From sequence record MT811961.1: a DNA stretch of 64,000 nucleotides, one strand, 5' to 3'. Position 1 is the first letter of the stretch. Each line of letters begins with the position of its first letter. This document shows, piece after piece, positions 4,335 through 63,946 of this stretch. The position numbers and the translations under genes are program-made. Under the pieces are notes generated by a model, which did no database searches, was not told where the DNA came from, and saw nothing but the letters and a program-made list of their open reading frames with translations.

Positions 4335-4372
4335 GAAAACCCTACTCCCCGAAGGGAGTAGGATTCTTTTTA
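4335..4372. terminator. bidirectional intrinsic terminator
   Basis: CCTACTCCC-CGAA-GGGAGTAGG hairpin with A-run before and T-run after, between convergent genes. Confidence 0.85.
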
Positions 4373-4373
4373 T

Positions 4374-6603: not shown

Positions 6604-8769
6604 ATGTTAAATTCATTCCTGAATACTACGTACGGTAAGTCTCAATTTGAGATTATCCATGAGAACATGCAAGCAGCAATCGCTGACCAAAACATGGCTC
6701 TAACTCCAGAAGCTGGTGAGATCCTTGCTGACTTCAACGGTAACTGGGACAAGCTAGACTCTGGCAAAGCAGAAAAACTATCTGCTGCTATCTCTGCTGC
6801 TAAATCAGTAATCGAAGAAGCTAAGTTCGATGAGTTCCTAGCTAAACTTATCGTGGGTTCAGAAAAAGCACGCGTTGCTGACTTCATGGACAAAGAAGCT
6901 GCTGATCACCCTGGTTTCCAAGCTGGCCTAACTGCTGCCGCAACTATGGTTATCGCATCTGCTGCTCCACAAGCATACGCAGAAGCTTACGTATCTCCAT
7001 CTGCAACTATGGATGCTGACACTGAAGTTGTTGGTGTACTAGACGGCTACGACGTTGAAGGCTTTGATGACTTCAAATTCGACAAGTTCACTGTTAAATC
7101 AGCTATGACTGCTGGTGTTGTTGCAGCGACTTCTCCGTTCTCTCAAACATTCTTCCGTCCATCAGTTCTACCTGCTTCACAAAACGGTCTAGACCTTAAA
7201 GTGTTGGTTCCATACACTTACCGTCGTACTTACCGTCCAGGTACTGGTGCAGAAAACAAATTCCAACGTAAATACCTTGTTCGTGCTCCTATCGACCATA
7301 CAATCATGGAAGACAACAGCACTGAAATCATTCCGGTTTCTGATGCAGCACGTGCAGCTAAACTACAATCTGCTATCGCAGAGAAAGCTGTATCTCAACA
7401 CGGTGTAACGTTCAACACTCGTCCACTTAAGTTTGGTGAGCCAACTGACCTTATCGACGTTTCGTCTAACAGCCAGCTAATCAAGCTAGGTGACATGACT
7501 GAACAAGATACTCTAGATCCACTAGTATCTATCGGTCGCCAAGTAATCCGTCTAAACGACGGTACAGACAACGTTGACGTTGAAGTAGATCTAACTACTC
7601 ACGCTGGCGCAATGCTTAACTACCAAGCTGAAGGCTTCGAGCGTACTTCAACTACTGTAGGCGTATTCACTGTATGGGTGCACTCTACTGACCTTGACTA
7701 CGCAGGCGCTGCTGTAAGTGCTGGTCTAGACACTGCTGCTCTAGCATGGCTAACTGGCGACTACCGCTTGAAACTACAACTACGTATCTCTGCTCAAATC
7801 GACGAAGATGCGAACATGACTGTAGACCTAGCTGCTGCTGACATCGTTGCAGTTGACTTCGGTACTAACTTCGCTTCTACTGCTGATGCAACTCAACTAG
7901 GTGCATTCGTTGGCGCTGTAAGCATCGTTAAAGAAGAGTCTGGTTACTTCCCAGCTGCACGTCGTTCAAACAGCAACATGCGTGATGTTGGTACTATCGT
8001 TGACGCTGGTCGTGTAACTAAGTACCGTCTAGCTGCTCCACTAGGTGCTCCTCTATCTACTGTTAAGCCAATCGCTGCACTAGGTAACGGCGTATCAATC
8101 GATGGTCTATCTTCTGCTGCACGTCTACGTGACCTTGGTACTTCAGTAACTACTCTTCTTGAATTCGAGAAGAAACTGATCGCTACTCAAGATCTACCAG
8201 GCAACGCTGCTGCAATCGGTGGTCAACTTGTTGAATCTAAATACATCAAGAACGGCATCAACGTAAACCAAATCGTTCGTAACCGCGACTCTCGTTACGG
8301 TAACGAAGACTTGCGTGTACACTTGGTGAACGCAATCACTATGCTTGCTAACCGTCTGATCGTTGATTCTGGTTACCTACCAGCTCTAGAAATGTACACT
8401 GGTTCTCGTTCTAACTTCGAAGTAATCGTAGTAACAGATCCAATCATCGCTAACCACCTAATGACTTCAGGTGATGGCCGTACTCTAGGCAACAACCGTC
8501 GCTTCAAAGTAAGTGAAGTTGATGATGCACGTATGCGCGGTAAGATCTACGTATCTCTAGCACGTACAGATACAACTGGTGCTGACGTAATGTCTTTCGG
8601 TACACAGATCATGTGTTCTCCGTTCGTACACCAAGCGCAAGTATCACTAGGTGGTTCTACGCACACAATGCAACAAATCATTCCACGTACGTCTTTCCAC
8701 GTTACGTTACCTATCCTAGGTCGTATCGACGTTACTGGTATCGAAGAGTTCTACCTACAACCTGCATAA
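6604..8769 (+). CDS. major capsid protein precursor (phiKZ gp120-type)
   Basis: 721 aa. Very strong high-expression codon bias (GCT/GCA, GGT, CTA, AAC, TTC). Size, synteny with DnaB and RNAP beta, and C-terminal P...H...LPILGRIDVTG pattern fit. Followed by a strong terminator. Confidence 0.85.
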   Translation: MLNSFLNTTYGKSQFEIIHENMQAAIADQNMALTPEAGEILADFNGNWDKLDSGKAEKLSAAISAAKSVIEEAKFDEFLAKLIVGSEKARVADFMDKEAADHPGFQAGLTAAATMVIASAAPQAYAEAYVSPSATMDADTEVVGVLDGYDVEGFDDFKFDKFTVKSAMTAGVVAATSPFSQTFFRPSVLPASQNGLDLKVLVPYTYRRTYRPGTGAENKFQRKYLVRAPIDHTIMEDNSTEIIPVSDAARAAKLQSAIAEKAVSQHGVTFNTRPLKFGEPTDLIDVSSNSQLIKLGDMTEQDTLDPLVSIGRQVIRLNDGTDNVDVEVDLTTHAGAMLNYQAEGFERTSTTVGVFTVWVHSTDLDYAGAAVSAGLDTAALAWLTGDYRLKLQLRISAQIDEDANMTVDLAAADIVAVDFGTNFASTADATQLGAFVGAVSIVKEESGYFPAARRSNSNMRDVGTIVDAGRVTKYRLAAPLGAPLSTVKPIAALGNGVSIDGLSSAARLRDLGTSVTTLLEFEKKLIATQDLPGNAAAIGGQLVESKYIKNGINVNQIVRNRDSRYGNEDLRVHLVNAITMLANRLIVDSGYLPALEMYTGSRSNFEVIVVTDPIIANHLMTSGDGRTLGNNRRFKVSEVDDARMRGKIYVSLARTDTTGADVMSFGTQIMCSPFVHQAQVSLGGSTHTMQQIIPRTSFHVTLPILGRIDVTGIEEFYLQPA

Positions 8770-22916: not shown

Positions 22917-23339
22917 ATGGAAAACATCCATGTGCTATTTCCGTTCTTTACTGGACAGCTACAAACCGAGTTGTACTTTCAAACACTCATGGCCTTTGTG
23001 GCTTTGTTCTTGTTATTCACAACTCCTTTCTCAGGAGCTAATCGAAAACTCCAGTCAGCGTCTAAGACCTGTTCGGCTATTGGCTGTCTGATACTTGTCG
23101 TCCTCTTGGCTTATCTGTGTGGCTTTGGTATCTTTGAGTATATACTCCCAGGCAAGACTGGCGGAATCATGGGATTCTTACTGGGCTACATTGCCATGCT
23201 TGAGATGATGATTCAGGCAGCACACAAAAGCAAGATACGCGGCATGTTCGTTTCGATGCGTCTTATGGTCATTGCAAAACGACTAACGATCGCTTTGGCC
23301 ATTGGTACGATCTTTTACGTACAGTGCTATCAAGTCTAG
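22917..23339 (+). CDS. polytopic membrane protein (about 4 TM)
   Basis: 140 aa, four hydrophobic segments, AAGGAG RBS. Confidence 0.75.
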   Translation: MENIHVLFPFFTGQLQTELYFQTLMAFVALFLLFTTPFSGANRKLQSASKTCSAIGCLILVVLLAYLCGFGIFEYILPGKTGGIMGFLLGYIAMLEMMIQAAHKSKIRGMFVSMRLMVIAKRLTIALAIGTIFYVQCYQV

Positions 23340-25993: not shown

Positions 25994-26077
25994 CCCTTAA
26001 AGCTCATTGGGACGCCAGTGGGCTTTGTGGGAGATACTTCAGAAAATGACATCGTCATAAGCACAGAGGAAACTAAA

Positions 26078-26278
26078 ATGAAATCACAATTTGAAAACAC
26101 GGTAGACAATGAAATGGCACGCATCACTGCGGAGCTGAACATCAATGCGACTGAACGTGCATCTATTATGGATGCAGTAGCAGACCTGGGCAAGATCACA
26201 CAAGAGCCAGCAGCGGTAACGGCTATGTTCGAAACCGCACGCGAAGTTCTAAGCCGCCCTCAGCCATTCTATCTGTAG
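26078..26278 (+). CDS. small hypothetical protein
   Basis: Likely start MKSQFEN at 26078 (GAGGA RBS), 66 aa. Confidence 0.7.
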   Translation: MKSQFENTVDNEMARITAELNINATERASIMDAVADLGKITQEPAAVTAMFETAREVLSRPQPFYL

Positions 26279-26287
26279 TAACATGTA

Positions 26288-26325
26288 AAGCCCATTCTGT
26301 GTGAATGGGTTTGTCAGGTTTTTAT
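26288..26325 (+). terminator. probable intrinsic terminator
   Basis: AAGCCCATTC-TGTGT-GAATGGGTTT followed by GTTTTT. Confidence 0.55.
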
Positions 26326-26346
26326 GCGTTTCAAGAAATGTTGATG

Positions 26347-26384
26347 TCTATATAACCAGGATGATTATATGCATGTAATCATTC
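26347..26384 (+). promoter_or_regulatory. early-type promoter TCTATATAAC plus leader hairpin ATGATTA...TAATCAT
   Basis: Recurrent motif with hairpin at the same offset as other copies. Confidence 0.7.
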
Positions 26385-26442
26385 GAATGATTATTTTTAT
26401 CCCAGGCAATAATGTCTTTTAAATATCCTTAAGGAAAACATT

Positions 26443-27204
26443 ATGAAAACTTTAACTGCACTTCTATCTATCGCTTCTGTTCTTTTCGCTGCTTCTGCTG
26501 GTGCTGTTGATCTATCAACAACTCATACAACAGGTACAACGACTACAACAGTAAACGTTGATCAACACGTAACTGGTACAACTAACGGTCTTGAGTTTAA
26601 CTACTCTCAAAACCGTGGTGGTGCAATGGGTGGCGTTAACAATCAATGCGGCGATGTAGCTTGTCAAGGTACTGGTAACGATACTTTAAACGTTGGTGTA
26701 TCACTAGACGTAACTGAGCGTATCGGTAAGATCGATCAGCTAACAACTGGCGTTACTACAACTCGTATCGAAAACTGTGATGTGACCGTTGCTATCGGCG
26801 GTCTATCTAACAGCCAAGGTTACCGCATGGGTTCTACTCATGGCGAAACAACAACTCAAAACCACAACACAGTTGACATCAAAACTGTTAAGATCGATAT
26901 CGCTACTCAAACTGACCTAGGTTACACTGGTTCACATGGTAGCTCTAAACTGGGTAATGACTTCACTGCGAACATCAATGGCATCGATGTAAACTCTGAA
27001 GGTAATTCTATCCCAGTAATGATCCTAGCTGATCGCATGTTGGACAACCCAAATGCAATCACAATCAACGGTCAAGATCTTAAGTCTGCTGACGTAAACG
27101 GTATGTCTATCAAGATCGATGTATCTGATCTAAACGTATACGACCAAGGTAGCTCTACTGCTGTTACTGATTCCGAGTTCACTACGCACTACGAAAACAA
27201 CTAA
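26443..27204 (+). CDS. secreted Thr/Gly/Asn-rich beta-strand protein with Sec signal peptide
   Basis: MKTLTALLSIASVLFAASAGA|V signal peptide (AxA). Strong high-expression codon bias. Confidence 0.8.
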   Translation: MKTLTALLSIASVLFAASAGAVDLSTTHTTGTTTTTVNVDQHVTGTTNGLEFNYSQNRGGAMGGVNNQCGDVACQGTGNDTLNVGVSLDVTERIGKIDQLTTGVTTTRIENCDVTVAIGGLSNSQGYRMGSTHGETTTQNHNTVDIKTVKIDIATQTDLGYTGSHGSSKLGNDFTANINGIDVNSEGNSIPVMILADRMLDNPNAITINGQDLKSADVNGMSIKIDVSDLNVYDQGSSTAVTDSEFTTHYENN

Positions 27205-27221
27205 TCTCTGATTAGGCGCTC

Positions 27222-27256
27222 GATGGGGACTGCCACTGGTAGTCCCCGTCTTTATC
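27222..27256 (+). terminator. hairpin/terminator between the two secreted-protein genes
   Basis: GATGGGGACTGCC-ACT-GGTAGTCCCCGTC followed by TTTAT. Confidence 0.6.
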
Positions 27257-27280
27257 ATAACTTTTATTTTTGGAGTTTCC

Positions 27281-27952
27281 ATGAAACAATATTTACTTGC
27301 TCTTGCTTTACTGTCTCTGTCTTCTTTCTCTTTCAGTTCGAACGCGAATGAATGTTCGACAGGTGGTTGTGGTGATAGTAACTCAAATCTGTCTGGTTCA
27401 CAAAATCAATCACAGTACAATACTTTACAGCAGTCACCGACAATGGCTTTGAATAGCTCACAGTCAAACACAGTTGTAAATGCCACGCACCAAACGAATG
27501 GATCGTTCTCGCATTCAGCGGATGGCGGTATTAACTTTGGCGGTGGTTGTCCTACCAACACACTTATCTTTACAGGTGGTGCTGGTAATAACCGCTCACA
27601 TTCTCGTCCGAGTAATTACCGTAGTGACAGCAACAACATGTATGCGGCAGTGAGTCTCGTTGTACCATTTGGTGAAGCGGTAGACAACTGTCAAGAACGC
27701 GAGGCGGTTTCTGTTAAGGCAGCCAAGTACGCATATACAAAGCTACAGGTATCTACTTGTCTTGTATTCATGCGTCAGGGCATTAACCTACAGTCACTTG
27801 CAGAAATGGATCCACAGTTCAGTATATGTCCGCGTATTGCCTTAGAAGCAGAACGTAACTTCCATGATGAGATTGGTCGTCGTGCTGTAGAGCAATACAA
27901 AAAGAATATGCAAGCCCAAGGTATCGATATCTACAAAGGCTTTCGTAAGTAA
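27281..27952 (+). CDS. secreted Cys-containing protein with signal peptide
   Basis: MKQYLLALALLSLSSFSFSSNA signal peptide, S/N/Q-rich N-region, GC..TL hairpin, YAAVSLVVPF strand, then C..C..C helical tail. Confidence 0.8.
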   Translation: MKQYLLALALLSLSSFSFSSNANECSTGGCGDSNSNLSGSQNQSQYNTLQQSPTMALNSSQSNTVVNATHQTNGSFSHSADGGINFGGGCPTNTLIFTGGAGNNRSHSRPSNYRSDSNNMYAAVSLVVPFGEAVDNCQEREAVSVKAAKYAYTKLQVSTCLVFMRQGINLQSLAEMDPQFSICPRIALEAERNFHDEIGRRAVEQYKKNMQAQGIDIYKGFRK

Positions 27953-28014
27953 TAAACTCGATGCCTCTTACGAGAGGCATCTATGATTATTATTTATCCC
28001 AGGAGAAAACAACC

Positions 28015-28317
28015 ATGGATTCATTAACAAAAGCATTGAACATTTTGGATGATCTAGATCGCCATCATGTTTATCCTCATCGCTATCTAGCATACCAGAT
28101 CAAAATGCTGGATGACGATGTTGCAGTTAAACACATCCTTACTCGTCTAGCGACGCGCGCTAGTTATGAGAATCAACCTTCATTAGTTATGGCTGCTTTT
28201 GAAGCGGCACCAACCCACGTACGACTAGAGTTCGATCGTGAGAATGGATCTGTCCGTAAAATAACGGCAGGCGAGATGCTAAACGAAATGCGCGCACTTA
28301 AACACATCAAAGCTTAA
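28015..28317 (+). CDS. hypothetical protein
   Basis: Likely start MDSLTK at 28015 (AGGAG RBS). Confidence 0.7.
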   Translation: MDSLTKALNILDDLDRHHVYPHRYLAYQIKMLDDDVAVKHILTRLATRASYENQPSLVMAAFEAAPTHVRLEFDRENGSVRKITAGEMLNEMRALKHIKA

Positions 28318-28331
28318 TCGGAGAAATAACC

Positions 28332-30464
28332 ATGAATGCAATTAGTCTAAAAACACCAGCTCGTTTCCTTAAAGAACTCTTCTCGGATGTAACCTATTTC
28401 CAACAGTATGAAAATAGCTGTGAAGTATTTACATTCAAACTAGGGAACAAAGCTCTAACTCGACTAAACAATGTCTTCGGCATCAAGCTTCGTTCTCGGG
28501 TAAGTTACCCAATCGGTCACATGCATGAAATGATGCTCGGTAAACGCAAGCCAGATGTTGGTTTAGTACTATTGATGATTTGTCGTGGTGAATTTGAAAA
28601 CATCAAAACGAATCTTCATGTGGCTACTATTGTTAAGCAGCGCTTCGATGGAATCAAAGATGTCAACGACCTGCCGTACGGTGCGTCAATGGAAATGAAA
28701 CTCCAGCGCATCTTTGCTCATAGTACATATGGTGTTACTGGTACCGTCTTGACTAAAGAGACAGTCAGCCTAGCCGCCGCAGACGAAACAGTGGCGAAAA
28801 TCGGCTGTGCCCTTGAACGAAGTGCTGACATCAAACACATCAGTGGTGTGATTTCAGACAGTACTATTTCAGAAGCGTTTACTTGTCCGATCATCGCTGG
28901 CATTAAAGCATGGCATGTCAATATCATGATGTTTATGGGCATGATGGAAAACAAAGAACCAGGTTCACTAAAAGAACATGGTCTGGTAACCTCATCATGG
29001 GTTGACTTATTCCGTGACACAGATAACCACGCCCGCCTAAACAACCTGCTACAATCACTAATTCAACCACAAACTAAAACAGAAGATAAAGAGGAAATTC
29101 CTATGAACAACAAACTTCTATCTCGTGCATACGTAACCGAAACAATCGCAATGCTACGTAGCCTACCTGGCATGTTTATGTCACATTTAAATGCTAAGTC
29201 AGCCGATGGTACTTGGACTATCCATATTACAGCAGACATTGCTAAAATTCTTGCTGACCGCGGTTACTGGACAACTCGCGGCGTTGGTGCTTGTGTTCTT
29301 GATGCCAAGAACATCAAGGATTCTATCTCTAGTTACATCATGAGTAACACCGAAGCGAATGAGGTAGTTCCTTTGATCCTATTTACTGCATTTAAGATGA
29401 CTGAGTTCCCTATCGACAAATGTCTAGATAGCGGTGCAAAATTGGTACTAGACAAGATTGCTCCTGCAACCAACCAAGCTCAAATCATCGCCCCTGATGA
29501 ACGCAACATGATCAAGGAAATTTACCAAATGAATTTCCGTGCATCACACCATCCAGAAGGCATTATGATTATATTGTCAGAAAATGTGGCATCTGTTTTA
29601 AACCATTTCTCTGGCAAGAATCTATTCACTGGCGGTGCAATGCGTCTGAACTCAAGTGAGTTACAAAAACTGATGCAGGATGAAGATCGACCACTTGCGT
29701 TCCGTCTGGCTGTCTTTGCAGTAGTTGATGCAACGACCACAAAGGATCCGGAAAGTGCTTTTAAAGAAGCATGTCATATCGCTACAGCTGAAGAGTTTAC
29801 CAAATGGGCAACAAACATCATTGTACAGCATGACAAGCTAGTGAAGCACATGCAGCCGCACGCACAATACCAGTTTGGTCATGCACCAAACCAAGACTTC
29901 GGTGGGTTTACTTCGCCTAGCTATGGTCCACTCATCAACAGCCAGGCAATGGAAACTGTAGCTAAGAATCTGAAGGAAATGACCTCAGACATTGAACTGT
30001 TAATGCCAGAAGGTACGCATTTCACTCCGGGCGTAATGGTCAAGCTTGTACTTAAGCCAGGTTGTGATATTGAGTTCCCTAATCTTTGCGGTGCATTGCA
30101 ACCACTTACGATTACTCCAATCTCAGTAATGGTAGGTGAGTCAACAGTAATGCGTGTAATGATTGGTCACATGCATCAAGACCATCAGGCAACTAACATG
30201 TTTGCTGAAATGCTAGTGAACAAAGAAACTCGCTCTATCGAAGATCTCATTGGCATTGTGGCAGGTATCCTAGGACATAGTCTAGCACCTCAACCATCGC
30301 AAGAGTTGATCAGCGAAGTTGTGCGTGCATTGCGTGGTATGGGCGTCGGCATTCCTGTACCTGCGACGGCACATGACCTGTTGACTGCATTGACTACTGC
30401 TTTAGGTAACAAGGCGCGCGCTAATGCGGGTCAATATGATCCACGCCGTGCGTTCGTTTGGTAA
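28332..30464 (+). CDS. large hypothetical protein
   Basis: 710-aa ORF with GGAG RBS. No recognisable catalytic motif. Confidence 0.8.
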   Translation: MNAISLKTPARFLKELFSDVTYFQQYENSCEVFTFKLGNKALTRLNNVFGIKLRSRVSYPIGHMHEMMLGKRKPDVGLVLLMICRGEFENIKTNLHVATIVKQRFDGIKDVNDLPYGASMEMKLQRIFAHSTYGVTGTVLTKETVSLAAADETVAKIGCALERSADIKHISGVISDSTISEAFTCPIIAGIKAWHVNIMMFMGMMENKEPGSLKEHGLVTSSWVDLFRDTDNHARLNNLLQSLIQPQTKTEDKEEIPMNNKLLSRAYVTETIAMLRSLPGMFMSHLNAKSADGTWTIHITADIAKILADRGYWTTRGVGACVLDAKNIKDSISSYIMSNTEANEVVPLILFTAFKMTEFPIDKCLDSGAKLVLDKIAPATNQAQIIAPDERNMIKEIYQMNFRASHHPEGIMIILSENVASVLNHFSGKNLFTGGAMRLNSSELQKLMQDEDRPLAFRLAVFAVVDATTTKDPESAFKEACHIATAEEFTKWATNIIVQHDKLVKHMQPHAQYQFGHAPNQDFGGFTSPSYGPLINSQAMETVAKNLKEMTSDIELLMPEGTHFTPGVMVKLVLKPGCDIEFPNLCGALQPLTITPISVMVGESTVMRVMIGHMHQDHQATNMFAEMLVNKETRSIEDLIGIVAGILGHSLAPQPSQELISEVVRALRGMGVGIPVPATAHDLLTALTTALGNKARANAGQYDPRRAFVW

Positions 30465-30581: not shown

Positions 30582-31496
30582 ATGAGTATGCCAACCTGCC
30601 AAGAAATCATTAATGCAATTCGACTTAGCTGTTCGGAAAGCTGCTATGACTTCTTTTTCCTCAATGACTTTGAGGATCATTACAATCATCTGGTCAAACT
30701 AGGTTTTGATACAGATATGAAATGGGCACACTTACTTGCTCAGTTACGTCACGAGTCCGGTGGTTTTGCTTTCTTCATGGAGAATCTAAACTACTCAGAA
30801 AAAGCAGTAATGCGTGTTTGGCCTAAACGCTTTAAGACACGTGCTGGTGCTCGTAAAGTAGCTCGTAACCCACAAGCTCTAGCCAATGCGGTTTACAATG
30901 GTCGCATGGGTAACCGAATGGGTACAGACGATGGATGGAACTTCCGTGGTCGTGGTCTTATTCAATTGACTGGTCGAAACAACTATCTGGACATTACACG
31001 CAAGTTCGGTTTGGACTTTCTTAATGACCCAGATCGTTTGGCTAAACAAGCTAAGTCAATGTGGTGGGCAGCCGGTGATTTCTTTGCAACACGCAAACGT
31101 GGCGGTAAGACTCTTATTGAGTTAGCTGCTAATAATGACGTGCGCAATCTAACCCGTGCAATCAATGGTGGGTATCATGGTTTAGAAGATCGTAAAGCTT
31201 GGACTGAGTTTTACATTTCTGCTTTCCGTAATACCAGCAAGCTAGGTCGTACTAGTCTTGTTAAACGCGGCAGTCGCGGTAAGTTCACGAAGAACGTACA
31301 GCACATGCTATTCAAACTTGGTTATCTAACTAAGTCATATCAAGTCGACGGCAAATACGGTCCTTCTACTGAGGCAGCTATTAAACAGTTCCAGAAATGG
31401 GCAGACCTCAAACAGGACGGTATCGTCGGTTCAAACACATACGTCACTCTCTTCGTTCGTTATGATGAGGCGATGGACATCGAACAAAATTTCTAA
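30582..31496 (+). CDS. glycoside hydrolase family 19 lysin with C-terminal peptidoglycan-binding domain
   Basis: AHLLAQLRHESGGF..FMENLNYS, DGWNFRGRGLIQLTGRNNY, INGGYHGLEDR, and C-terminal V...Q..L......VDG.YGP.T..AI..FQ....L..DGIVG. Confidence 0.92.
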   Translation: MSMPTCQEIINAIRLSCSESCYDFFFLNDFEDHYNHLVKLGFDTDMKWAHLLAQLRHESGGFAFFMENLNYSEKAVMRVWPKRFKTRAGARKVARNPQALANAVYNGRMGNRMGTDDGWNFRGRGLIQLTGRNNYLDITRKFGLDFLNDPDRLAKQAKSMWWAAGDFFATRKRGGKTLIELAANNDVRNLTRAINGGYHGLEDRKAWTEFYISAFRNTSKLGRTSLVKRGSRGKFTKNVQHMLFKLGYLTKSYQVDGKYGPSTEAAIKQFQKWADLKQDGIVGSNTYVTLFVRYDEAMDIEQNF

Positions 31497-44603: not shown

Positions 44604-47600
44604 ATGGCTTTACCAACCATTATTCGATTGTTCCATCATCAAGGAAGTCAGGATTCCACTAACTGGATTATCTGGGCAGATCGTAACGCGCAAGACGTAC
44701 CTGCAAAGATTCCTAACTTCTTACCTGCATACAACTTCCAAAAAGGAAGCTATGTATTTCATGATGATCGAATCTATCGTTCAAAGAAACTCATCCTAGC
44801 TGGAGAATTTAATTCAGAGGCATGGGAAGAGGTTGTTTTACAAACCGGTTTTGTGGCTCGCCACGAACCAATGCGTGACTACGAAGAAGATAGCTTCGTC
44901 CTAGATGCACTTGGCAACCTACTGGGCAACAAAGCTCCAGTATCGGCTGGTGTGTTTAATCCAGATCAATGGGAAGCTGTTACAAGTGGCCGCCATATCG
45001 ATACCGCTACGGTCTATCTGGACGTATTAGGCGAAGAGCGCTACGAGACTATTGAAGAAGGTGTGTTCGTTCTTCTGGGTGGCGTACCGGAGGCATTTGA
45101 CCCATTTGAAAACATGGGTGAAGTAGACGCCTACTTTGAGAAAGGTTATACTGGTTATCGTTTCCAATTCAACCGTGACTTGGTTTGCTTTGTAGATAAT
45201 GAAGGCAGTGTTCCTTGTAACCCTGGTGACCGCGTAGGTCTTGTTAAGTCAGTTGTTGGTGATGCAGTCTTGCGTCAATACGATGCTGATTTAAAACCTG
45301 TTTATCTAGAAGATGCAACAGGCAGTGGGTACATCAGCTTCTCTGGTGACCAACACCTAATTCTAAAGACTCCGGAAAACAAAGCCGCGGTCCACGAGTT
45401 CCTTGGTGTCCCTGGTACAGGTGCCTTCGCATATCTGGACCAAGACAAAGACATTACCGAACATCGCATTGGTCCTCGTTTCCCAAGTGAAAACAAAACT
45501 TGGAATCTAAGCGAAGTATTGTTCTTGACCGAAGACGTTGTCGATTCTGAGCTTGATGGTATCTTTGATGAGATCAACGAGCTGGCAATCAACAGCTATC
45601 CGTCTGATGCGATTACGTCATTGGCGTATATGTTCTTGAATGATACCGAGTTCAATCAAGATCTTTCTCATTGGCAGTTATTCGGTAAAACAAATCTTTC
45701 TTCTATGTTCTCTGGAGCAACGGTATTTAACAAGCCGATACAACCATGGGACATGCAAACCGTTACACATACAACAAGTATGTTCGACGGCGCAAGTGCA
45801 TTTAACCAACCACTGAACAACTGGGACTTTGCTAACCTTAAAGTAGCGAAGGCCATGTTCCGCAATGCATTGGTATTTAACCAACATCTCTTTAACTGGG
45901 AAATGTTCGGTGTTTCTGATGTATCGCAAATGTTCCAAGGCGCAATTGCCTTTAATGGTTCGTTAGCTGGATGGGACCTGGGTCTTACAGGCGACGTAAG
46001 TTACATGTTCGATGGCGCAAGTGCGTTCAACCAACCAGTAGCTAATTTCCGTTTATCTCGTGCAACAAAACTCACTGCAATGTTCCGTAATGCGGTTGAG
46101 TTCGACCAACCGCTAACAGGCTGGCGTACTCATGACGTAACGGATATGAGTTACTTTGTTGCTGGTGCGATTAAGTTTAACCAAGACTTGGATCATTTTG
46201 AAACAAGCAATGTAACTAGCCTAGCAGGTGCTTTTGATGGAGCTGCTGCTTTCAACTGCAACGTTTCAACATGGGACGTAAGCAAGGTTACAAACTTCAA
46301 TGCAACCTTCCGCAATGCGGTTGTATTTGCACAAGACATTTCACTGTGGCAAACAGACTCAGCCACAAACATGGTAGAAATGTTCTCTGGCGCTGCGGCG
46401 TTCTCGTATGACATCTCTGCTTGGTGTGTGCGTTTGATTGTTGATGAGCCAAATGGCTTTGATGCAGACACAAAGACAGGCTGGCAAGATGTAGATGCGT
46501 TACAACCGCAATGGGCGATGCCATGTCTTAAGTACTTTGCACACTCGTTCTACAATGCTAACTTGATTGGTACATTGTTCCAAGATACAGAAGGTAAAGT
46601 ACCGGTAACCACACCAGGTGATAAAGTTCGTCTGATGTTGGACCTGACCACAAAAGGCAATCATGCTACGGCTGCATTAGCAACCGCACCTACGTATCGT
46701 CAAGACATCAATGGTAATGGCTATTTAGAATTCAACAACGATGAGTTCATGTCATTCCAAGATGGTGGTGATAACTATCATACATGGGAAACAATTCCAG
46801 GTATTGGTGTTTTACATGTAACTGATACAGATACAACAATCGGTCCTCGTGTAGCGGGCGATCAAAAACGTTATGTCGGTCAGTTTGTGGCACTTGCAGA
46901 TACCTATACTCCAGAAATGAAGTTGGTAGCAAGTGAGTACGTGGGTGAGGCATTTGCGCTTTATGACCAAGGTACAGTAACTAGTCTAGATTACTATCTT
47001 GAAGGTTTGAATACTTTCAATGAAGATATCTCTGGCTGGCAAATGGACTCGGTTAAAAGCATTGTTGGTCTATTTAAAGACACACTTGCGTTCAACCAAG
47101 ATATCTCCAGTTGGGTAATGTCATCTCTTGAACGAATGGACTTTGCATTCGCTGGAGCTAAAGCATTCAACCAAGACATTGGTGGATGGGATACGTCTAA
47201 CGTAACAAGCATGGAAGGCGTGTTCGAAGGAGCATCTGCGTTTAACTATGATCTTCCTTGGGATACTGCAAAAGTTACTACCTTTGCACGTGCTTTCAAA
47301 GATGCAAAAGCTTTCAATAGCCAAGTGCCATTTGACTTGACTTCGGCAATTACTATCGACGAGATGTTCGCTGGTGCGACTGTCTTTAACCGTCCGTTGG
47401 TTGGCCCAGCTCCAGTCTTAGAAAGTGCCATGGCAACATTTAAAGGTGCCTCGCTATTCAATAGTGCTGTGACTGACCTGATTGGCCCTACGGTTAAAAC
47501 GATCGAATCGATCTTTGAAGATTCAAACCAGTTTAATTCTGATCTGGCTACCTGGAATACTTCAGGAGTAGAAAGCTTTAAACGTGCGTTTGCTCGTGCG

Positions 47601-50600
47601 GTTGTCTTTGATAGTGCAATCGATCATTTCGACTTGTCGTCTGCTTTGACTATTGAAGAGATGTTCTTTGGTAGTGTGGCGTTTAACCAGCCGATTGATA
47701 GTTGGACAACAACGACTGTTACTAACATGGCAGGTGTGTTTGATGGTGCAATTGCTTTCAACCAACCTATCCAGTCTTGGGATGTTCGCTTTGTAGAAAC
47801 CTTCTACCGTACATTCTCTGGTGCGGCTGCATTCAACCAACCACTAAACTTGTGGCGTACTGAATCGGCTAAGACCTTCAAGATGATGTTCCAATCGGCA
47901 CTTGTCTTTAACCAAGACTTGGCTAACTGGAATACAACAACGGTTACTGACTTCGATCGCATGTTCTTTAATGCGACAGCTTTCAATCAAGACATCTCGC
48001 CTTGGTGTGTGAAGCAAATCCCAGTAACTGGTCCGACGATGTTCTCGTTTGGTTCCCCACTAGAGCAAGACTTCTTGCCTATCTGGGGTGCACGCTGTTT
48101 AGCTGACTTGGCTGACCTTTGGTATGACGCTGGTGACATCACAAAAGTCTTTACTGACGAAGCTAAGACAACGAACCCGACTCCTGGTGATCGTGTTGCT
48201 GTATTAGAAGATATCGGTAAACTTGGTTTAGATGCAGTTCAAAGCGATGTTGCAAAACGTCCTATTTATCGTCAAGATGCAGCTGGCCTTGGTTACCTAG
48301 AATTCCCTGCCGGAACAGAGCTTCTTGTAAGTGGTGTTTCTGGTACAGGTGTTTGGGTAAACAACATTCCGTCTGTTGGTGGTTGGGGTGATTATATTAC
48401 CGTACCATCTACTACGTTCAAGATTGATTTTAATGCACAAGAGAAAGCAGGTGCGACTCGCAAGATGGGTCAGCTTATTGTTTACTTTGGTGCTCCAATT
48501 GCTACAGATATTCTCGTGCTATCAAAAGCAGCTGGTCGTTGGGCAAAACTATACGCCCCTGGTGCAGTAAGTGACATTAGCTGTGCGTTAGAAGACCGTA
48601 CTGAGTTTGACTGGGATATCGACAGCTGGAATATGTCGCGTGTTACTCGTGCTGACTATCTCTTTGCCGGTTGTGAAATTTACAATCGCCCAATGGATTC
48701 TTGGGATACCAGTGCATTAGTTTCTGCTGTGGGTATGTTTAAAGATGCGGTTGATTTCGATCAAGCTCTACCTTGGGACCTAATGTCACTTGTAGATGCT
48801 TCGTACATGTTCCATAACGCAACTGTCTTTAATGGCGATATCGTATCATGGAATACACCAGCCCTTCAGAAAATGGAAGGTATGTTCTACAATGCACGTC
48901 AGTTTAACCAGCCTATTGGTAACTGGGACGTAAGCAAAGTAACAATCTTTAAAGAAGCATTCCGCAGTGCAGTCCGCTTTAACCAGCCTTTATTGGGATG
49001 GAATACCGACAGTGCTGTTGACATGTCTCGTTTGTTCCAAAACACAGAAGTATTCAACCAGCCTCTTACAAGTTGGGTGACTGCATCCGTAGAGAACTTC
49101 GAAGGCATGTTCATGTCTACGCCTGTGTTTAACCAGCCGTTGAATCATTTCGATACTTCGTCTGCAACAAACATGCATTTCATGTTCCGAGATGCAGAAG
49201 ACTTTGCACAAGATCTAGATACTTGGAATGTAGAAAGTGTATCTGACTTCCGTGGTATGTTCTACGGTGCAGACTCGTTTAACCACAATATCGCTACTTG
49301 GCAGTTTAACGCAACTGACATCCTAATGGATGAAATGTTCCGTGAAGCATCTATCTTTAACTACGACATCTCTCTATGGGATACTGTCAATGTTACAAGC
49401 ATGATGCGCATGTTCAACAACGCTTACTTGTTCAACCATAACTTGATCACGTGGTGTGTTAAGAACGTAACTCCAGATGAGGCCGTAGACTTTGGTGAAA
49501 GTAGTCAACTTGATACTACCGAAGTTCCTTTGTTTGGCCAGCCTTGTGTGGGTGAGCTTTTAGATGGTTACTATGACCCTTCTATCAAACAGCTATTAGG
49601 CATTAACGTAGATGGTTCTGGTGTACCTGCTCCTGGCGAACGTGTTGCATTTATTGGTGATATTTCTGGTAAGGGTAACAACGGTGTTCAGGCCGATGTG
49701 ACAAAACGTCCGGTTTACCAAGAAGATACAAATGGTCGTGGCTATCTTGTATTTACTGATGATGAACATTTTGTTGTGCCGACTATTACTGACAGTTCTC
49801 GTAACTGGGTAGCAATAGCGGGTCGTGGTGTTCCTCAATGGGAAGGTCAACCAAATGGACCAGCTAAGCTAGGTATCAAGTCTGCTGGTGGTTCAGAAAA
49901 AGTATGGATCTGGGCAGGTGAAGCAGTAGCAACCGACACAGCACTAACCGCTGTTGAATTGGGCTCTATTCGCGATGCAATGAAATTACGTGCTGATGCA
50001 TATACAACCGAACTACAAAGCAGTATCTCTTACTTGCTGGCAAATGAAGAGTATGTGACTGGCGGTATGACTGACTTCCGTCTAAACTCTATTGCTTCTT
50101 TGCGTGGTTTGTTTAAAGGTGCGGTTCGTTTCAATGAAGACATCTCTGGTTGGGATACAACCATTGTCGGTGATCTAACAGAAACGTTCATGGGTGCGGC
50201 AGCATTTAACCAAGATCTGTCTGGTTGGACGACTGATCAAGTTCAGTTCCTAGACGATGCTTTCCATGGCGCGAGTTCATTTACGTCTGATCTATCCGGC
50301 TGGGTAACATCAAAAGTACGTAGCTTTAACCGTGCGTTCAAAGACTGTAGTAACTTTGAGTCTGACTTGTCGGGATGGACGATTCGTACAGATGTACCAG
50401 TTTCATTGATGGGTACATTTACAAGTGCAGCTAAGTTTGTTTCTGACCTAAGCAGCTGGGATACAAGCAGCGTAGTTTCTATGGCTGACTTGTTCTATGG
50501 TGCACTACTATTCAATAGTGACTTGTCATCTTGGGATGTACGCAAAGTAACGAACATGACAAACATGTTCCGCTCTGCTCCATTGTTTAACTCTGATCTT

Positions 50601-53600
50601 GGTGATTGGCGCGTAAGCGCTGTATTGACCATGGATTATATGTTTGATGGTGCAACTGCGTTTGACCAAGATATCTCTCGTTGGTGTGTACAGCAAATCG
50701 CGAGCAAACCAATTGACTTTGACAAGGGTGCTGCATTTGCAGGCGATGGTGCAAAACAGCCTTATTGGGGTGGTTTCTGTTTGACCGAACGTTCTGAGTT
50801 CTTCCATAGTGGTTCTGACAAAGACTGCATGTGGCAAGATACTGCAAGAACTATACCTGTAACAAACCCTGGTGACCCTGTTGCGTTCGTAATGGACTTG
50901 ACTGGTAACCAACGTCATCTACAGCAATCAGATAACGCTAAACGACCTATCTATCGTGAAGACGATAACGGCGTAGGTTATCTTGAGTTTGGCCCTAATC
51001 ACGACATGATCGTAGATTACAATGGCCGTGCTGACCACATCATCGGCGTAGTTGGCCGTGGTAAGATGACAACAGCGAACATCGACTTCTATGGCGGTAA
51101 AGGCATTAAACGTTACTTTACTCCTAATGCAATCGGTGTACACAAGCTAACGGACATGGCAGGTATTGCTCCTACATTGGACGCAGCATCTAAAACGTCT
51201 GCTAACAACACGATGTCTCAGCGTGCTAAAGTTTATGCAGCTAATGCTCAGACAACAATGAACGACTTCTTTGCGGGTAACTTGAACTTTAACAATGTCG
51301 ATGTGCAAACATGGGACATGCGTGAAGTTACTTCAATCCAGTCAATGTTCAGCGGCTGTGCTTCTATGAACCTAGACTTGTCTACGTGGAATACAGCTAA
51401 ACTAACAAACGCTACCTATGCATTTAAAGATGCTGGTGCATTTAACAAGTCAATTGATGCGTGGAATGTACAAGCACTAACAAACACAATGGGGATGTTC
51501 CAAGGTGCAACTGCTTACGACCAACCAATGTCTAGCTGGACGACTTCAGCACTAGCGACAACAAAATGGATGTTCAAAGATGCGGTAGCATTTAACCAAG
51601 CATTGTCTTGGGATATGAGCAAAGTAACTGATGTAAGTTACATGTTCGAAGGAGCTGAAAACTTTAACCAAAATATCTCTGGTTGGAATGTTGCTACTGT
51701 AACGACTGCCGAAGGTATGTTTAAAGATGCAAGCCGCTTTAACAACGCAAGCTCTTCTATGGCTAACATGGATTGGTCTGCATGTACGAACTTTACTCAT
51801 ATGTTCCAAGCTGCATTGAACTTCAATGCGATTGTAGATAACTGGACATTCTACTCTGGTGCCTCTGCAATTACAATGGCAGGTATGTTCATGGATGCTC
51901 GTGCATTCAACAAGAACGTAAATACTTGGAACACAACACGTGTAACCGACATGAACTCTATGTTCCGTGGTGCTTATGCGTTTAACAATGGCTTACAGGC
52001 CCTCACAGAGGCCTCAGGCAACTTTACAGTAGCAAATGCTACAACTCTACAAAGAATGTTCCAAGACGCTCGTGCGTTTAACCAGAACATTTCTGATTGG
52101 TCTACTGGTAACGTTACAGACATGAGCTTTATGTTCTTCTCGAACTCATCTGTATCGGTATTCAACCAACCAATCGGTAGTTGGAATGTTGGCAATGTAC
52201 TTACTATGGAATCCATGTTCCACGGTACAAGTGCGTTTAACCAAAACCTAGCTAACTGGAATATGAGCAAGGTTACGAATGTAACCAACATGTTCCGTAA
52301 TGCAACTGCTTATGATAACGGCGGTGTAAACGAACTAGAGAAATGGGATACTTCTTCATTTACTGCGATGCGCGGTATGTTTGAATTTGCAACAGCATTT
52401 AATAAGATGCTTTGTCGTTGGGACGTAAGTAACGTAACAGACATGACAAACGTCTTTAACGGTGCAGATGCAATGACAGCATATCTAGCAGGTTGGGATG
52501 TTCAACATATCCCATCAGAGCCGAATCTATTCGGTGCGGTCAATGTGGCGAATCCTCCACAATGGGGCTTGGCTCCTGATCCATGTCGTTCTGATTGTTC
52601 GCGTGGCTTAGCGGATGCTGGTTCGATTGCGACTTACCTTGGCTTCGAGAAACAATGGTTCTACCAAGACACAGCAGGTACTACTCCAGTAACTGCATCT
52701 GGTCAAAAGGTAATGCTGTTGGAAGATAGTTCTGGTAACGGCAACGACATCACTTGGGCCGATGCAGCAAGTGCACCAACTTATCGTGAAGACGCAAACG
52801 GTAACGGCTATTTAGAATTCGAAGAAGGACAGTCTATCCAGTACGCTGGAATGAGCGACGGTGCCTTGATTGTATTCAATCTAGTCAACAACGGTATTGT
52901 TTCAATTACACGCGATACGGCTACAGGCGAGATCTTTGGTAATGATCGCGACGATGCATTCCTTGTATCGGCAATTGCGATTGCACCAAGTACTGCTGAT
53001 GAAACAGCATTAAGAACGGCCATGGGTACATGTGGTCCAACTTATGCCGATCGTAACACAACGTTCCAAAACCTATTTGCAGGTGAAGAACACATTGGCT
53101 CTGTAGCGGGTCTAAGTACAACGGGTGTAACTAACTTTGAGGGTACTTTCCTTAATGCGATAAACTTTAATGAGGATATCAATGCATGGGATATGAGCTC
53201 AGCTCTAACTACCAAAGGTATGTTCTCCGGTGCAACTGCGTTCAACCAAAATGTTTCTAGCTGGGTAGTTTCTTCCATTGTAACAATGGAAGACATGTTC
53301 CGTGGCGCTGGAGCGTTTAACAATGGTGGTACAGCTGGTACAAACTCAGTACCTTTGACATGGACAACTACTGCTCTTACTGACATCACTGGTGTATTCC
53401 GTGATGCAAGTGCGTTTAACCAAGACATCTCCTTGTGGAATGTGAGTGGGGTTCAGTCATTTGCTTTTGCGTTTGCTGGAGCAACCTCGTTTAACCAGAA
53501 TGTTTCGGGTTGGACTACAGCCGCTGCAACAAACATGCAAGCAACGTTCCAAGGTGCAACTTCATTCAACCAACCTTTGGCTGGATGGGATTTAACCGGC

Positions 53601-56600
53601 GTAGTAACAATCCAGTCTATCCTTGAAGGTGCAACATCGTTTGACCAACCGGTAAACTGGGACGTGTCTACGGTAGCTAACTTCGGCAAGGCATTTAAAG
53701 GAGCATCTGCATTCAATCAAGATCTTTCTGGTTGGGATACAGCTTCGGCAGTAGACCTTCGTGAAATGTTCATGAGCGCAATTGTCTTTAATAGTGATCT
53801 GTCTACATGGGATGTTAGCGATGTAACTTTCTTCCAAGGTATGTTCTGTGATGCGATTTCGTTTAACGGCAATATTTCAACTTGGGATACTGGTTCAGCA
53901 GTTAACATGTCTTATATGTTTGATGGTGCCAATGTCTTTAACGGAGACCTTAGTAACTGGAAAACCGGACTTGTTACGACAATGTCGAATATGTTCCACA
54001 ATACCTCCGACTTTAACAAGCCGATTGGTCGTTGGGATGTAAGTAAAGTTGTTGACTTCGATCATATGTTCTCAGATGCACTTGCATTCAATCAGCGCAT
54101 CTCTTGTTGGAACACCGAGTCAGCTACAAACATGGATGACATGTTTAACAATGCAACTTCCTTTAGTCAAAACTTGATTGGTTGGTGTGTGGATAAAATC
54201 ACAACGAAACCAACAGACTTTGATACGGGTACGGGTGCATCGTTCTTGAACAGCACTACACTACAGCCACAATGGGGTACATGTACACCTGGTTCGATTG
54301 GTGGTGATAACATACTGGCTTCGTTTAGTCCAACGCTAAAAGAAACACTATGGCAAGACTCAGGTAAGACAGTTCCTGTTGCAAACGTTGGAGACAACAT
54401 TGCAGTTATCGAAGATACATCGGGTAACGGCAATGACTTGATTGTCACTGGCGGCTGTAAGTACATGGAAGATTCAAATGGCCTAGGCTACATCAGACTG
54501 GAATTTGCTCCGCCTCTTCCTGGTCAACCGATGTTACCGCCTCCGACTCTTTCTATTCCTACGGTAACCACGTCGTGCGATATTGCATTTGTTATCCCAT
54601 CAGTAGGTGATACAATTGTTGAACGTACCAATGGTACAGACATCTTTGGTCCAGCATTTAGACCTATGAACTTTGGTCCTATCGTAATCACAGCGAGTGG
54701 TTCTGGATCTACGGTTCGTGGTTTCGACTGTACTGAATATGGACCTGGGTTGACTACAATGTTGGCAGATTACTTTGCTAACGACACAGCGTTTAACCAG
54801 AACCTAGATCATTGGGATACAAGTGACGTAGAGTACTTCTACTCGCTATTCCGAGGTGCAACAGCATTTAACAATGGTGGTACTTCTGGTGCAACAACAT
54901 CTCCACTTATGTGGGATATGTCGTCAGCTATCGAGCTAGACGAAATGTTTAGAGACGCAACTTCATTTAACCAACCAGTTGGCTCATGGGACGTAAGTAA
55001 CGTGACTTCAATGGAAAGTTTATTTGAAGGTGCTACGAGCTTTAACCAAAGCGTCAATGCTTGGACAGTAACTGTACTTGAAAATGCAGCCTCTATGTTC
55101 CAAGACGCTACGTCCTACAACCAAGCAATGGATAGCTGGACAACTCCCGCATTGAGTGATATTAACTATATGTTCTCTGGTGCAACGGCATTTAACCATC
55201 CGTTGGATAATTGGGACGTAAGTAATGTTACAGAAATGCGCAATGTGTTTGAAGGTGCGACTGCATTTAACGGCACAGTAAATGGTTGGAATACCACAAA
55301 CTGTACGGAACTTGTAGATGTATTTAAAGAAGCATCTGCCTTTAACCGTCCATTGGATAATTGGGATGTAAGTAACGTCACAACAATGGAACAGTTGTTT
55401 ACCGATGCGATTGCATTTAACCAGCCATTGAATACTTGGGATGTAAGTAACGTTAAGAACTTCATCAGTACGTTTGAAGGTGCACTTGACTTTAACCAAG
55501 ATCTTTCAAGCTGGACTCCTGTAGCAGCCGAAGTTACCGAATACATGTTCTACCGAGCAAGTTCGTTTAACAACGGTGGTGTGGGTACCATGTACTGGGA
55601 TGTGAGCAATGTGTTCTCGGCAGGTGGTATGTTCAATGCAGCTTCTGCCTTTAACGCTAACTTGAGTGGTTGGAAAACCACACGCCTGGGCAATGCAGTA
55701 GAGATGTTCAAAGATGCGGTAGCATACAATCAGCCAATGGGTTGTTGGGATGTAAGTAGTGTAACAGCCATGGAAGAAATGTTCATGGGTGCGACACTGT
55801 TTGATCAATCGCTACAGGGATGGAATGTTGAAAACATCGGTTCTAAACCAAGTGATTTTGACACGGACTCTGGTATTGAAAACGATGCGAACAAACTACC
55901 TATCTGGGGTACAAGTGGTACAGGCGGTCTAACTGCTTCTAGTCCACTGTCGTTTACTCGTATTGCGGACATTGAAGGTCTATGGCAAGACTTTGCTAAG
56001 ACTACCGCAGCAACAGCAGACGGCGATCCAGTAGCAGTAGCAGAAGACTTCTCTGGTAACTCAAATGAAGTATGGTTCCAAAATACGACTTTGAGAATTG
56101 ATGGTAATGGCAATGGTTATCTTGAAATGACCAATGGCGGTAACTTGCGCGCAGATAGCGTTCGAGTAGCTGCTGACTTATCATTCAATGTTCCAGGTGT
56201 AGGACATACATTTGTTCCTATGTTAGCTTCTGGCTCTGGTGTAACTTACTGGAACCAACCAGCAACAATGATGATTACAGACATCGTTATTACTGAGTCT
56301 GGATTTGGTAATACGGTAACAGGCCATAACTGTAAGACATGGATCCCTGGTACTACCACGTCATTGGATTACCTGTTTGCTGGACAAGAGAACTTCAATG
56401 GTGATCTAAGTCATTGGGATACTACTGGCGTTACTTCGGCTCAGTACATGTTCTTTAATGCGAAGGCCTTTAACCAGCCTTTGAATCATTTTGACATGTC
56501 AGCAGTTGAAAACGTAACGGGTATGTTTAATGGTGCTGAAGTATTCAATCAAGATCTAAACTCTTGGGATGTTTCGAAAGTAACAAGCGCTTCTTCTATG

Positions 56601-63909: not shown

Positions 63910-63946
63910 TCTATATTACCAACTTGGATTATGACATCTTAATCTA
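63910..63946 (+). promoter_or_regulatory. early-type promoter TCTATATTAC plus leader hairpin TGGATTA-N8-TAATCTA
   Basis: Recurrent motif. GAGAGGA RBS near the window end points to a gene starting just past 64000. Confidence 0.75.

Follow-up and report, generated by a model that had tools for sequence, protein, structure and literature searches.

An apparently mobile two-gene unit of lytic phages whose predicted exported products probably act in the host cell envelope

Why should a lytic jumbo phage carry, behind a promoter of their own, two small adjacent genes whose products both look destined for export? The question is raised by positions 26347-27952 of a 64,000-nucleotide stretch of sequence record MT811961.1, here called the window (subtracting 124000 from a record position gives the window position). 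Over 26000-28300 it matches Vibrio phage vB_pir03 (MT811961.1, 286 kb; pir03 below), which infects V. harveyi, at 100% identity and Vibrio phage C-ZP2022 at 90%. The paper describing vB_pir03 reports several multisubunit RNA polymerase genes together with phiKZ-type structural genes, which identifies it as a phiKZ-like jumbo phage (PMC7765460). Gene 1 (26443..27204, + strand, 253 amino acids (aa)) and gene 2 (27281..27952, + strand, 223 aa), annotated as hypothetical proteins QNI21124.1 and QNI21125.1, are indeed the two adjacent open reading frames (ORFs) that an initial annotation, made from the sequence, had placed there. That annotation went on to propose that the pair builds a surface fiber and its export pore. 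Our analysis indicates that the two genes form a self-contained unit that moves horizontally among lytic phages infecting Gram-negative, mostly marine bacteria, and that their products probably act in the host cell envelope and not in the virion.

Both genes are functional and under purifying selection, as judged by nonsynonymous-to-synonymous substitution ratios against C-ZP2022 of 0.23 for gene 1 and 0.044 for gene 2. A tblastn search placed them next to each other and in the same order in seven Vibrio phages: the jumbo phages pir03, C-ZP2022, sm033 (320 kb) and BONAISHI; VCPH (120 kb, Demerecviridae); and Vpas_PP24 (PP24 below) and vB_VhaS-a (82-83 kb). When the flanks of the pir03, sm033, VCPH, PP24 and BONAISHI loci were compared all against all, the pair were the only ORFs in common, with the exception of an endolysin that the pir03 and sm033 loci share. 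With the more distant loci described below, the two genes co-occur at 14 loci at least, on some six to eight unrelated phage backbones, and so passed the test of co-occurrence that had been set for them in advance. The pair is absent from most relatives of pir03, which argues that it is not a core virion gene. With its own promoter and terminator, its patchy presence among related phages and its unrelated genomic contexts, it has the properties of a moron-type accessory unit. In the literature on the carrier phages we found no usable virion proteomes or transcriptomes, and the BONAISHI paper gives ORF289 and ORF290 only as conserved hypothetical proteins.

How far does the family reach? Few metagenomic relatives come from large protein collections (9 of gene 1, 11 of gene 2), and a gene 2 profile drew only 20 matches among 1.84 billion representative proteins; the family alignments are shallow. 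Wherever a metagenomic contig is long enough, the partner gene is adjacent: the pair lies on contigs L008, L009 and L017 and, with its order reversed, on L016, where the downstream protein is still matched as a gene 1 relative by blastp. Distant relatives of gene 2 occur in Pseudoalteromonas phage J2-1, Shewanella phage 1/40, Erwinia phage pEp_SNUABM_01 and Synechococcus phages S-CAM7 and DSL-LC03, as well as on two metagenomic contigs of 126-136 kb. In J2-1, 1/40, S-CAM7 and L017 the gene just 5' of the gene 2 relative encodes a T/S/G/N-rich protein with a signal peptide, and profile comparison relates the one in Shewanella phage 1/40 to gene 1 (83% probability). The link to marine cyanophages that the initial annotation had proposed is therefore real if thin (S-CAM7 and DSL-LC03), and the secreted gene it expected beside the cyanophage relative is found in S-CAM7, whose neighboring gene encodes a T/S/G-rich protein predicted to be secreted. 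No cellular relative of either protein was found in GTDB, sampled as one genome for each of 185,579 bacterial and archaeal species, and none of either was found in IMG/VR or among plasmids. Searches of Pfam, PHROGs and NCBIfam with both proteins and all their relatives returned matches at chance level only.

Three of these distant loci carry features of their own. On L016 (126 kb), positions 4001-5310 hold a gene 2-like and then a gene 1-like gene with no strong hairpin between them, at a divergent junction beside tail genes, followed by a gene for a trypsin-like protease with a lipoprotein-like N-terminus. In S-CAM7 (NC_031927.1, 3806-4315) gp027 seems to have been annotated too short (123 aa): by tblastn, a full-length relative that has a signal peptide already matches from 135 nucleotides (nt) 5' of the gp027 start, and it is the ORF from 3806 that matches gene 2. 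In pEp_SNUABM_01, positions 3116-4339 hold three consecutive genes for small signal-peptide proteins (111, 125 and 167 aa) within a tRNA cluster, the middle one being a short, weak gene 2 relative that ends in Lys.

What regulatory signals belong to the unit? Ahead of gene 1 stands TCTATATAAC (26347..26356, + strand), a copy of the recurring phage promoter motif TCTATATWAC. The window has seven copies and the examined 212 kb of the vB_pir03 genome has 21, all on the + strand, typically 40-120 nt 5' of + strand genes and within an extended consensus, ATCTCTATATWACCnnnnTGnAT. The motif also precedes gene 1 in C-ZP2022 and sm033, and it was not found 5' of the major head gene or of the gene for a 921-aa virion protein. 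According to a review, a conserved AT-rich motif of about 10 nt can be computed upstream of early operons in each jumbo phage that encodes RNA polymerase, and where tested this motif is the early promoter of the virion polymerase (PMC7598289). By analogy, it is reasonable to regard TCTATATAAC as a promoter of this early, virion RNA polymerase type. The stem-loop directly 3' of it (26359..26384, + strand; -10.0 kcal/mol, z = -2.7 against shuffles) probably forms the 5' end of the gene 1 mRNA.

Farther into the 5' untranslated region (UTR), about 30-35 nt 5' of the gene 1 start codon, lies a 12-nt motif with a 4-bp inverted repeat, GGCAATAATGTC (given also as GGCAATAATGYC; 26405..26416, + strand). 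It is common to the gene 1 upstream regions of pir03, C-ZP2022, sm033, Vpas_PP24 and vB_VhaS-a, and a variant occurs in L009. The motif thus spans jumbo phages and unrelated 82-kb siphoviruses, and the cassette seems to travel with its regulatory parts; the motif may fold into an RNA stem-loop or serve as a binding site, carried along with the cassette. No Rfam match was found in 26200-28100, this motif included. A second shared element, ATGATTATT(N)TTTATCCCAGG, occurs at 26387-26406, 5' of gene 1, and again at 27983-28003, just 3' of the gene 2 terminator and 5' of ORF 27961/28016..28317; its part TATGATTATTATTT is also found 3' of gene 2 in sm033. The general rule that early transcripts start with a hairpin was considered and rejected, a stable hairpin directly following only 7 of the 21 promoter motif copies.

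Three hairpins on the + strand mark the edges and the middle of the unit. At the left edge, 3' of ORF 26018..26278, a hairpin with a 10-bp stem (26288..26312) was obtained by RNAfold of 26280-26330 (-17 kcal/mol); its T-run is interrupted and the terminator scan did not call it. The scan did call a terminator-like hairpin in the spacer between the genes (27222..27250), with a 13-bp stem (8 G-C pairs) followed by TTTATCAT, and another with a 9-bp stem 3' of gene 2 (27960..27981), which is kept in C-ZP2022 and sm033. Terminator-like structures thus flank the unit and divide it. At all 11 phage loci examined, all of them with gene 1 first, a strong G+C-rich stem-loop with Ts behind it lies between gene 1 and gene 2, and its stem sequence differs between phages.

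Is gene 1 made in large amounts? Its effective number of codons (Nc), 35.1, is the second lowest among 43 ORFs in the window, next to that of the major head protein (ORF 6604..8769, Nc 30.9), so the capsid-like codon bias noted at the outset holds; gene 2 has ordinary codon usage (Nc 45.1). The synonymous divergence of gene 1 from C-ZP2022 is 0.23, well below the roughly 0.5-0.6 of gene 2 and of the two well-conserved genes that come next downstream, as expected if codon choice in gene 1 is under selection. From its codons, gene 1 looks highly expressed. Fimbrial and pilin operons, too, have an abundant first gene with a strong stem-loop behind it and a more weakly expressed accessory gene after that, and here this layout recurs although the hairpin sequences differ. 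This likeness favors the original proposal, in which gene 1 would be a curli- or Fap-like extracellular fiber subunit and gene 2 an oligomeric outer-membrane beta-barrel that exports and anchors it. Unlike fimbrial operons, however, the pair has no chaperone, usher or pilin homology, its order is reversed on L016, and gene 2 of two phages seems to be served by a separate promoter.

Where do the two proteins go? At each N-terminus a K/R residue precedes a 14-15-residue hydrophobic stretch and a small-x-small site, giving a predicted signal peptide at 26443-26505 for gene 1 and at 27281-27346 for gene 2 (both + strand). The predicted cleavage sites are AGA|VD in gene 1, where A21 and V22 are invariant among 13 relatives, and SNA|NE in gene 2, where A22 is nearly invariant among relatives. 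Our sequence scan found no second hydrophobic segment in either protein. The Sec-type signal peptides assigned in the initial annotation are thus upheld, as features that resemble signal peptides and are conserved in both families, and we strongly infer that both proteins are exported. The conserved cysteines, together with the signal peptides, likewise place both proteins outside the cytoplasm. The gene 2 protein has no L-x-x-C lipobox at its cleavage site, its first cysteine lying 2-3 residues past the predicted signal-peptidase I site, and is not a lipoprotein.

These features bear directly on the reading that the two are virion or assembly proteins whose N-termini merely resemble signal peptides. 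The resemblance of gene 1 to the major head gene in codon bias and the presence of virion structural genes 5-7 kb 5' of the pair in pir03 would fit such a role. However, the signal-peptide architecture is canonical in both families, down to invariant cleavage-site residues, the conserved paired cysteines indicate folding outside the cytoplasm, and a pair that most pir03 relatives lack is found in myo-, sipho- and T5-like phages that have no other gene in common near it. We consider the chance that these are virion proteins very remote.

What kind of protein is gene 1? In its mature form it is rich in T (15.5%), G (11.6%), N (10.3%) and D (8.6%), and it has a conserved C-x4-C loop (C69, C74). 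An AlphaFold2 model built from 10 sequences (mean predicted local distance difference test score (pLDDT) 70) consists mostly of long beta strands, eight of them 15-20 residues in length, and has a small insert at 174-210; composition and model agree with the earlier description of a T/G/N/D-rich, mostly beta protein. Direct reading of the sequence shows strands whose polarity is far too high for those of an integral outer-membrane barrel. A fiber subunit of the curli type would be expected to have imperfect repeats; when thirds of the family profile were aligned against each other with hhalign, no internal repeats emerged (probabilities 0.7-10.5%), and none of 13 gene 1 members matched Curlin_rpt. 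A profile search of PDB sequences with gene 1 returned nothing at E up to 10.

Foldseek comparison of the gene 1 model with the PDB returned lists dominated by aerolysin-type proteins (Cry51Aa, parasporin-2, Cry23Aa with Cry37Aa, lysenin and aerolysin) and MACPF hairpins, with rotavirus VP5* also present (E ~1e-3). These matches suggest another reading, in which gene 1 would be a distant pore former of the aerolysin/ETX-MTX2 type, stored in the periplasm and freed at lysis, and gene 2 would be its partner or chaperone as in binary toxins such as Cry23Aa with Cry37Aa. An elongated, Ser/Thr-rich beta protein of about 250 aa with a predicted signal peptide, long strands and an adjacent partner gene does fit this class. 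However, the template modeling (TM) scores are 0.08-0.23 and the root-mean-square deviations exceed 20 A over long alignments, and RNA-phage maturation proteins appear when the model is compared with a viral structure library. Given these low scores and the company of VP5* and maturation proteins, the matches may reflect only a long twisted beta sheet, and we treat them as a lead at most. Moreover, the 13 gene 1 members gave no match to Pfam aerolysin/ETX_MTX2 at E up to 10, no amphipathic hairpin long enough to serve as a pore stem was found in gene 1, the family is confined to phages and always accompanied by gene 2, and the promoter looks early and not coupled to lysis. A pore former of this type seems improbable to us. 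In the viral structure library, the best match outside the family was a 194-aa protein (probability 1.0), which is the length of the protein encoded upstream of the gene 2 relative in J2-1.

Gene 2 is built differently. From alignment and model, its product (27281..27952, + strand) comprises in order a signal peptide, a C-x4-C loop, an S/N/Q-rich segment, a hairpin (~94-130), a helical domain (132-213) and a C-terminal F-R-K. The S/N/Q-rich segment holds a conserved QSPTMAL..S.SNT motif around P53. Across the wide alignment the C-x4-C loop is optional and is followed by a cysteine, the glycine-rich hairpin, and helices with three more conserved cysteines; C90 and C137 are invariant, and C160 and C183 are conserved in at least 90% of the family. 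The second strand of the hairpin (M120..F130) alternates hydrophobic residues. All the elements first noted in this protein, the S/N/Q stretch, the alternating hairpin and the cysteine-containing helical C-terminus, are thus present, the hairpin at low model confidence: pLDDT is about 80 in helical domain 132-213 and about 40 at 98-123. The model, itself poor, had no match among solved structures, and a profile search of PDB sequences with gene 2 returned nothing at E up to 10.

How does this architecture bear on the fiber and its pore? The pair resembles curli (CsgA/B with CsgG/E/F) and Fap in having a Sec-exported subunit, here predicted, with a dedicated partner, in its richness in N, Q, G, S and T and in an expected excess of the subunit; the abundance and beta content of gene 1, the alternating strand and the Q/N-rich segment of gene 2 would also suit such a system. 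Unlike curli and Fap, however, it consists of only two genes and lacks imperfect repeats, homology to Csg or Fap proteins and a lipoprotein channel. No member matches any Pfam family, be it curlin, CsgG/E/F, Fap or other, and among 26 gene 2 relatives neither Pfam nor NCBIfam gave a match to a CsgG-type channel, CsgE or CsgF. Fap has FapC-type repeats, for which gene 1 shows no counterpart, and a FapF-type barrel of about 400 aa, whereas gene 2 has 223 aa and a single low-confidence hairpin, its confident part being a soluble-looking helical disulfide domain. The proposed curli/Fap-like mechanism thus failed the tests of repeats, homology and lipoprotein channel, and an oligomeric outer-membrane pore made by a protein that is no lipoprotein and whose hairpin is so poorly modeled is pure conjecture. 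We regard the fiber-and-pore reading as quite unlikely.

A different destination is suggested by the C-terminus of gene 2. Of 22 relatives from phages of gamma-proteobacteria, 18 end in Lys; position -2 is then usually hydrophobic or aromatic (F-R-K in pir03), and the tail that precedes the Lys is variable and rich in indels. Work in Dickeya showed that L,D-transpeptidases attach Lpp, the inner-membrane protein OutB and even a periplasmic reporter to peptidoglycan through a single C-terminal Lys, which is both necessary and sufficient, and Lpp of Vibrio and Photobacterium ends in S/RYTK (PMC12274547). With its predicted export, the gene 2 protein has what defines such an Lpp box, exposure to the periplasm and Lys as the last residue, and like Lpp and Dickeya OutB it is helix-rich and carries a hydrophobic or aromatic residue at -2 (PMC12274547). 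Unlike Lpp, it has no N-terminal lipid anchor or lipobox, no trimeric coiled coil has been demonstrated for it, and it has extra N-terminal modules and disulfides; it also differs from the established Lpp box in that cyanophage-type members do not have the Lys and that the cross-link is putative. As far as sequence can tell, the terminal Lys and the disulfide-type cysteines suggest that gene 2 be read as a protein of the periplasm or cell wall, away from a pore. A SPOR-like wall-binding domain in the C-terminal extension of the 300-aa relatives (J2-1, P0027, P0028 and P0030) was also considered and rejected, as searches gave it no support.

Could envelope-targeted proteins of this kind belong to the lysis machinery, as an envelope-spanning or outer-membrane-disrupting device in place of spanins? 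In pir03 an endolysin gene (ORF 30582..31496, PHROG 181, E = 1e-49, annotated 'glycohydrolase') lies 2.6 kb 3' of the pair, in sm033 the endolysin lies about 4 kb 3' of it, and some gene 2 relatives have coiled-coil-like terminal tails. However, two-component spanins comprise an outer-membrane lipoprotein and an N-terminally anchored inner-membrane partner within a lysis cassette, and here a lipobox and an N-terminal membrane anchor are both missing and the two N-termini look cleavable; the genes do not overlap and are not nested, no holin adjoins them and other genes separate them from the endolysin. In VCPH, PP24, vB_VhaS-a and BONAISHI the pair is surrounded by small early-type genes and lies far from annotated lysis genes. 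The promoter motif appears to be of the early type, and a spanin would not be expected at the capsid-level abundance suggested for gene 1. We therefore judge a role in lysis to be very improbable.

The explanation we favor, although we put it at somewhat less than an even chance as a whole, is that an abundant periplasmic beta protein and a wall-anchored minor partner alter the envelope early in infection. We envision a scenario in which gene 1 would be transcribed early from the phage-polymerase promoter into an abundant, stable, mainly monocistronic mRNA, and gene 2 would be made in lower amounts by read-through or from a promoter of its own. Both proteins would be exported by Sec to the periplasm, where the gene 2 protein would fold with two disulfides and host L,D-transpeptidases would link its C-terminal Lys to peptidoglycan, as they do for Braun's lipoprotein and OutB. 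Its conserved N-terminal motif and hairpin could then hold or organize the abundant beta-sheet protein encoded by gene 1, and the resulting wall-anchored layer or complex would change the envelope early in infection. The likeliest effect would be to block adsorption or DNA entry of other phages, or to prevent loss of progeny on infected cells and debris. Each specific step must be rated below the model as a whole, and the biological role is its weakest step.

Phages are known to encode envelope proteins that exclude competitors, among them Llp of T5, Cor of phi80 and N15, Sp and Imm of T4, and Glo of Vibrio phage K139. The pair resembles these in being phage-encoded, exported (by prediction) to the periplasm or outer membrane, probably expressed before lysis, dispensable and patchy in distribution, and apparently a transcription unit of its own, as these often are. 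By this analogy, superinfection exclusion or protection of progeny appears the most likely role. The pair differs from the known factors in sharing no sequence or fold similarity with them and in being an obligate pair with one member of capsid-like codon bias, whereas each known factor is one gene, modestly expressed; neither pair protein is a small outer-membrane lipoprotein as Llp and Cor are, and there is no PHROGs match. We know of no exclusion phenotype for the pair.

Several observations weigh against this envelope model. The initial annotation had called the promoter early: the recurring phage motif is there as described, and its early class is a reasonable reading of the motif in the light of PMC7598289. 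It had also proposed that the spacer hairpin sets an excess of subunit over partner. The hairpin is real and all 11 loci fit such an excess; in VCPH and BONAISHI, however, promoter-like sequence 3' of the hairpin makes separate transcription of gene 2 probable, a near-copy of gene 1's sigma-70-like promoter in the former and the jumbo-phage motif in the latter, and the stoichiometry rule is perhaps not general. The signal peptides were assigned by visual inspection and a crude script; the latter calls cleavage sites too early and served only to locate the hydrophobic N-terminal window. The gene 2 model is poor, with a pLDDT of 51 overall and below 50 at residues 13-131, so that the hairpin and any contact with gene 1 are tentative, and binding between the two proteins is a proposal only. 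A C-terminal Lys is by itself a weak signal, since Lys is the final residue of over 20% of periplasmic proteins in E. coli (PMC12274547); the argument therefore lies in its conservation in the family and not in the residue itself, and four cyanophage-type members do without it. Finally, superinfection exclusion is argued by analogy only, and the model leaves unexplained why an exclusion factor should be as abundant as a capsid protein. In VCPH, which is T5-like, the promoters 5' of the two genes are nearly identical (TTGCCT or TTGCCA, 17 nt, TATAAT, with similar flanks), and each gene appears to own a copy of one promoter.

If the envelope model is correct in its main lines, what would the pair represent? 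Lytic phages are known to alter the host envelope, but with few single, well-studied proteins. Here, an obligate pair for which we detect no cellular or structural relatives appears to be exchanged, together with its regulatory signals, among jumbo, T5-like and siphovirus genomes, with distant versions in cyanophages, and this spread argues for a general and strongly selected envelope function in marine Gram-negative bacteria. In its most specific form, which we consider unlikely although worth stating, the pair would be a new mobile phage module whose minor protein copies the lysine box of host Lpp, is stapled to the wall and early in infection recruits a phage protein of capsid abundance as a periplasmic or sub-outer-membrane layer, which would shut the cell to other phages or control envelope mechanics until lysis. 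Were gene 2 to use the host route of lipoprotein attachment, its product would be the first known case of a phage protein bound covalently to peptidoglycan. The pair also has a practical side, since pir03, C-ZP2022, PP24 and BONAISHI are candidates for phage therapy in aquaculture and corals: a probably abundant, exported protein whose model bears a faint structural likeness to pore formers merits characterization before its carriers are used.

Other genes in the window have features of separate interest. While several nearby genes, gene 1, gene 2 and the endolysin among them, are 91-99% identical between pir03 and C-ZP2022, ORFs 28332..30464 and 22917..23339 have protein identities of only 57% and 59% and are local hypervariable genes; the phage collection contains no further relative of the 710-aa protein. 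ORF 44604..63857 (+ strand) spans 19.3 kb and encodes 6417 aa, which places it among the largest phage ORFs likely to be met; its codon bias is moderately strong (Nc 43.5), and a copy of the promoter motif lies 3' of it at 63910.

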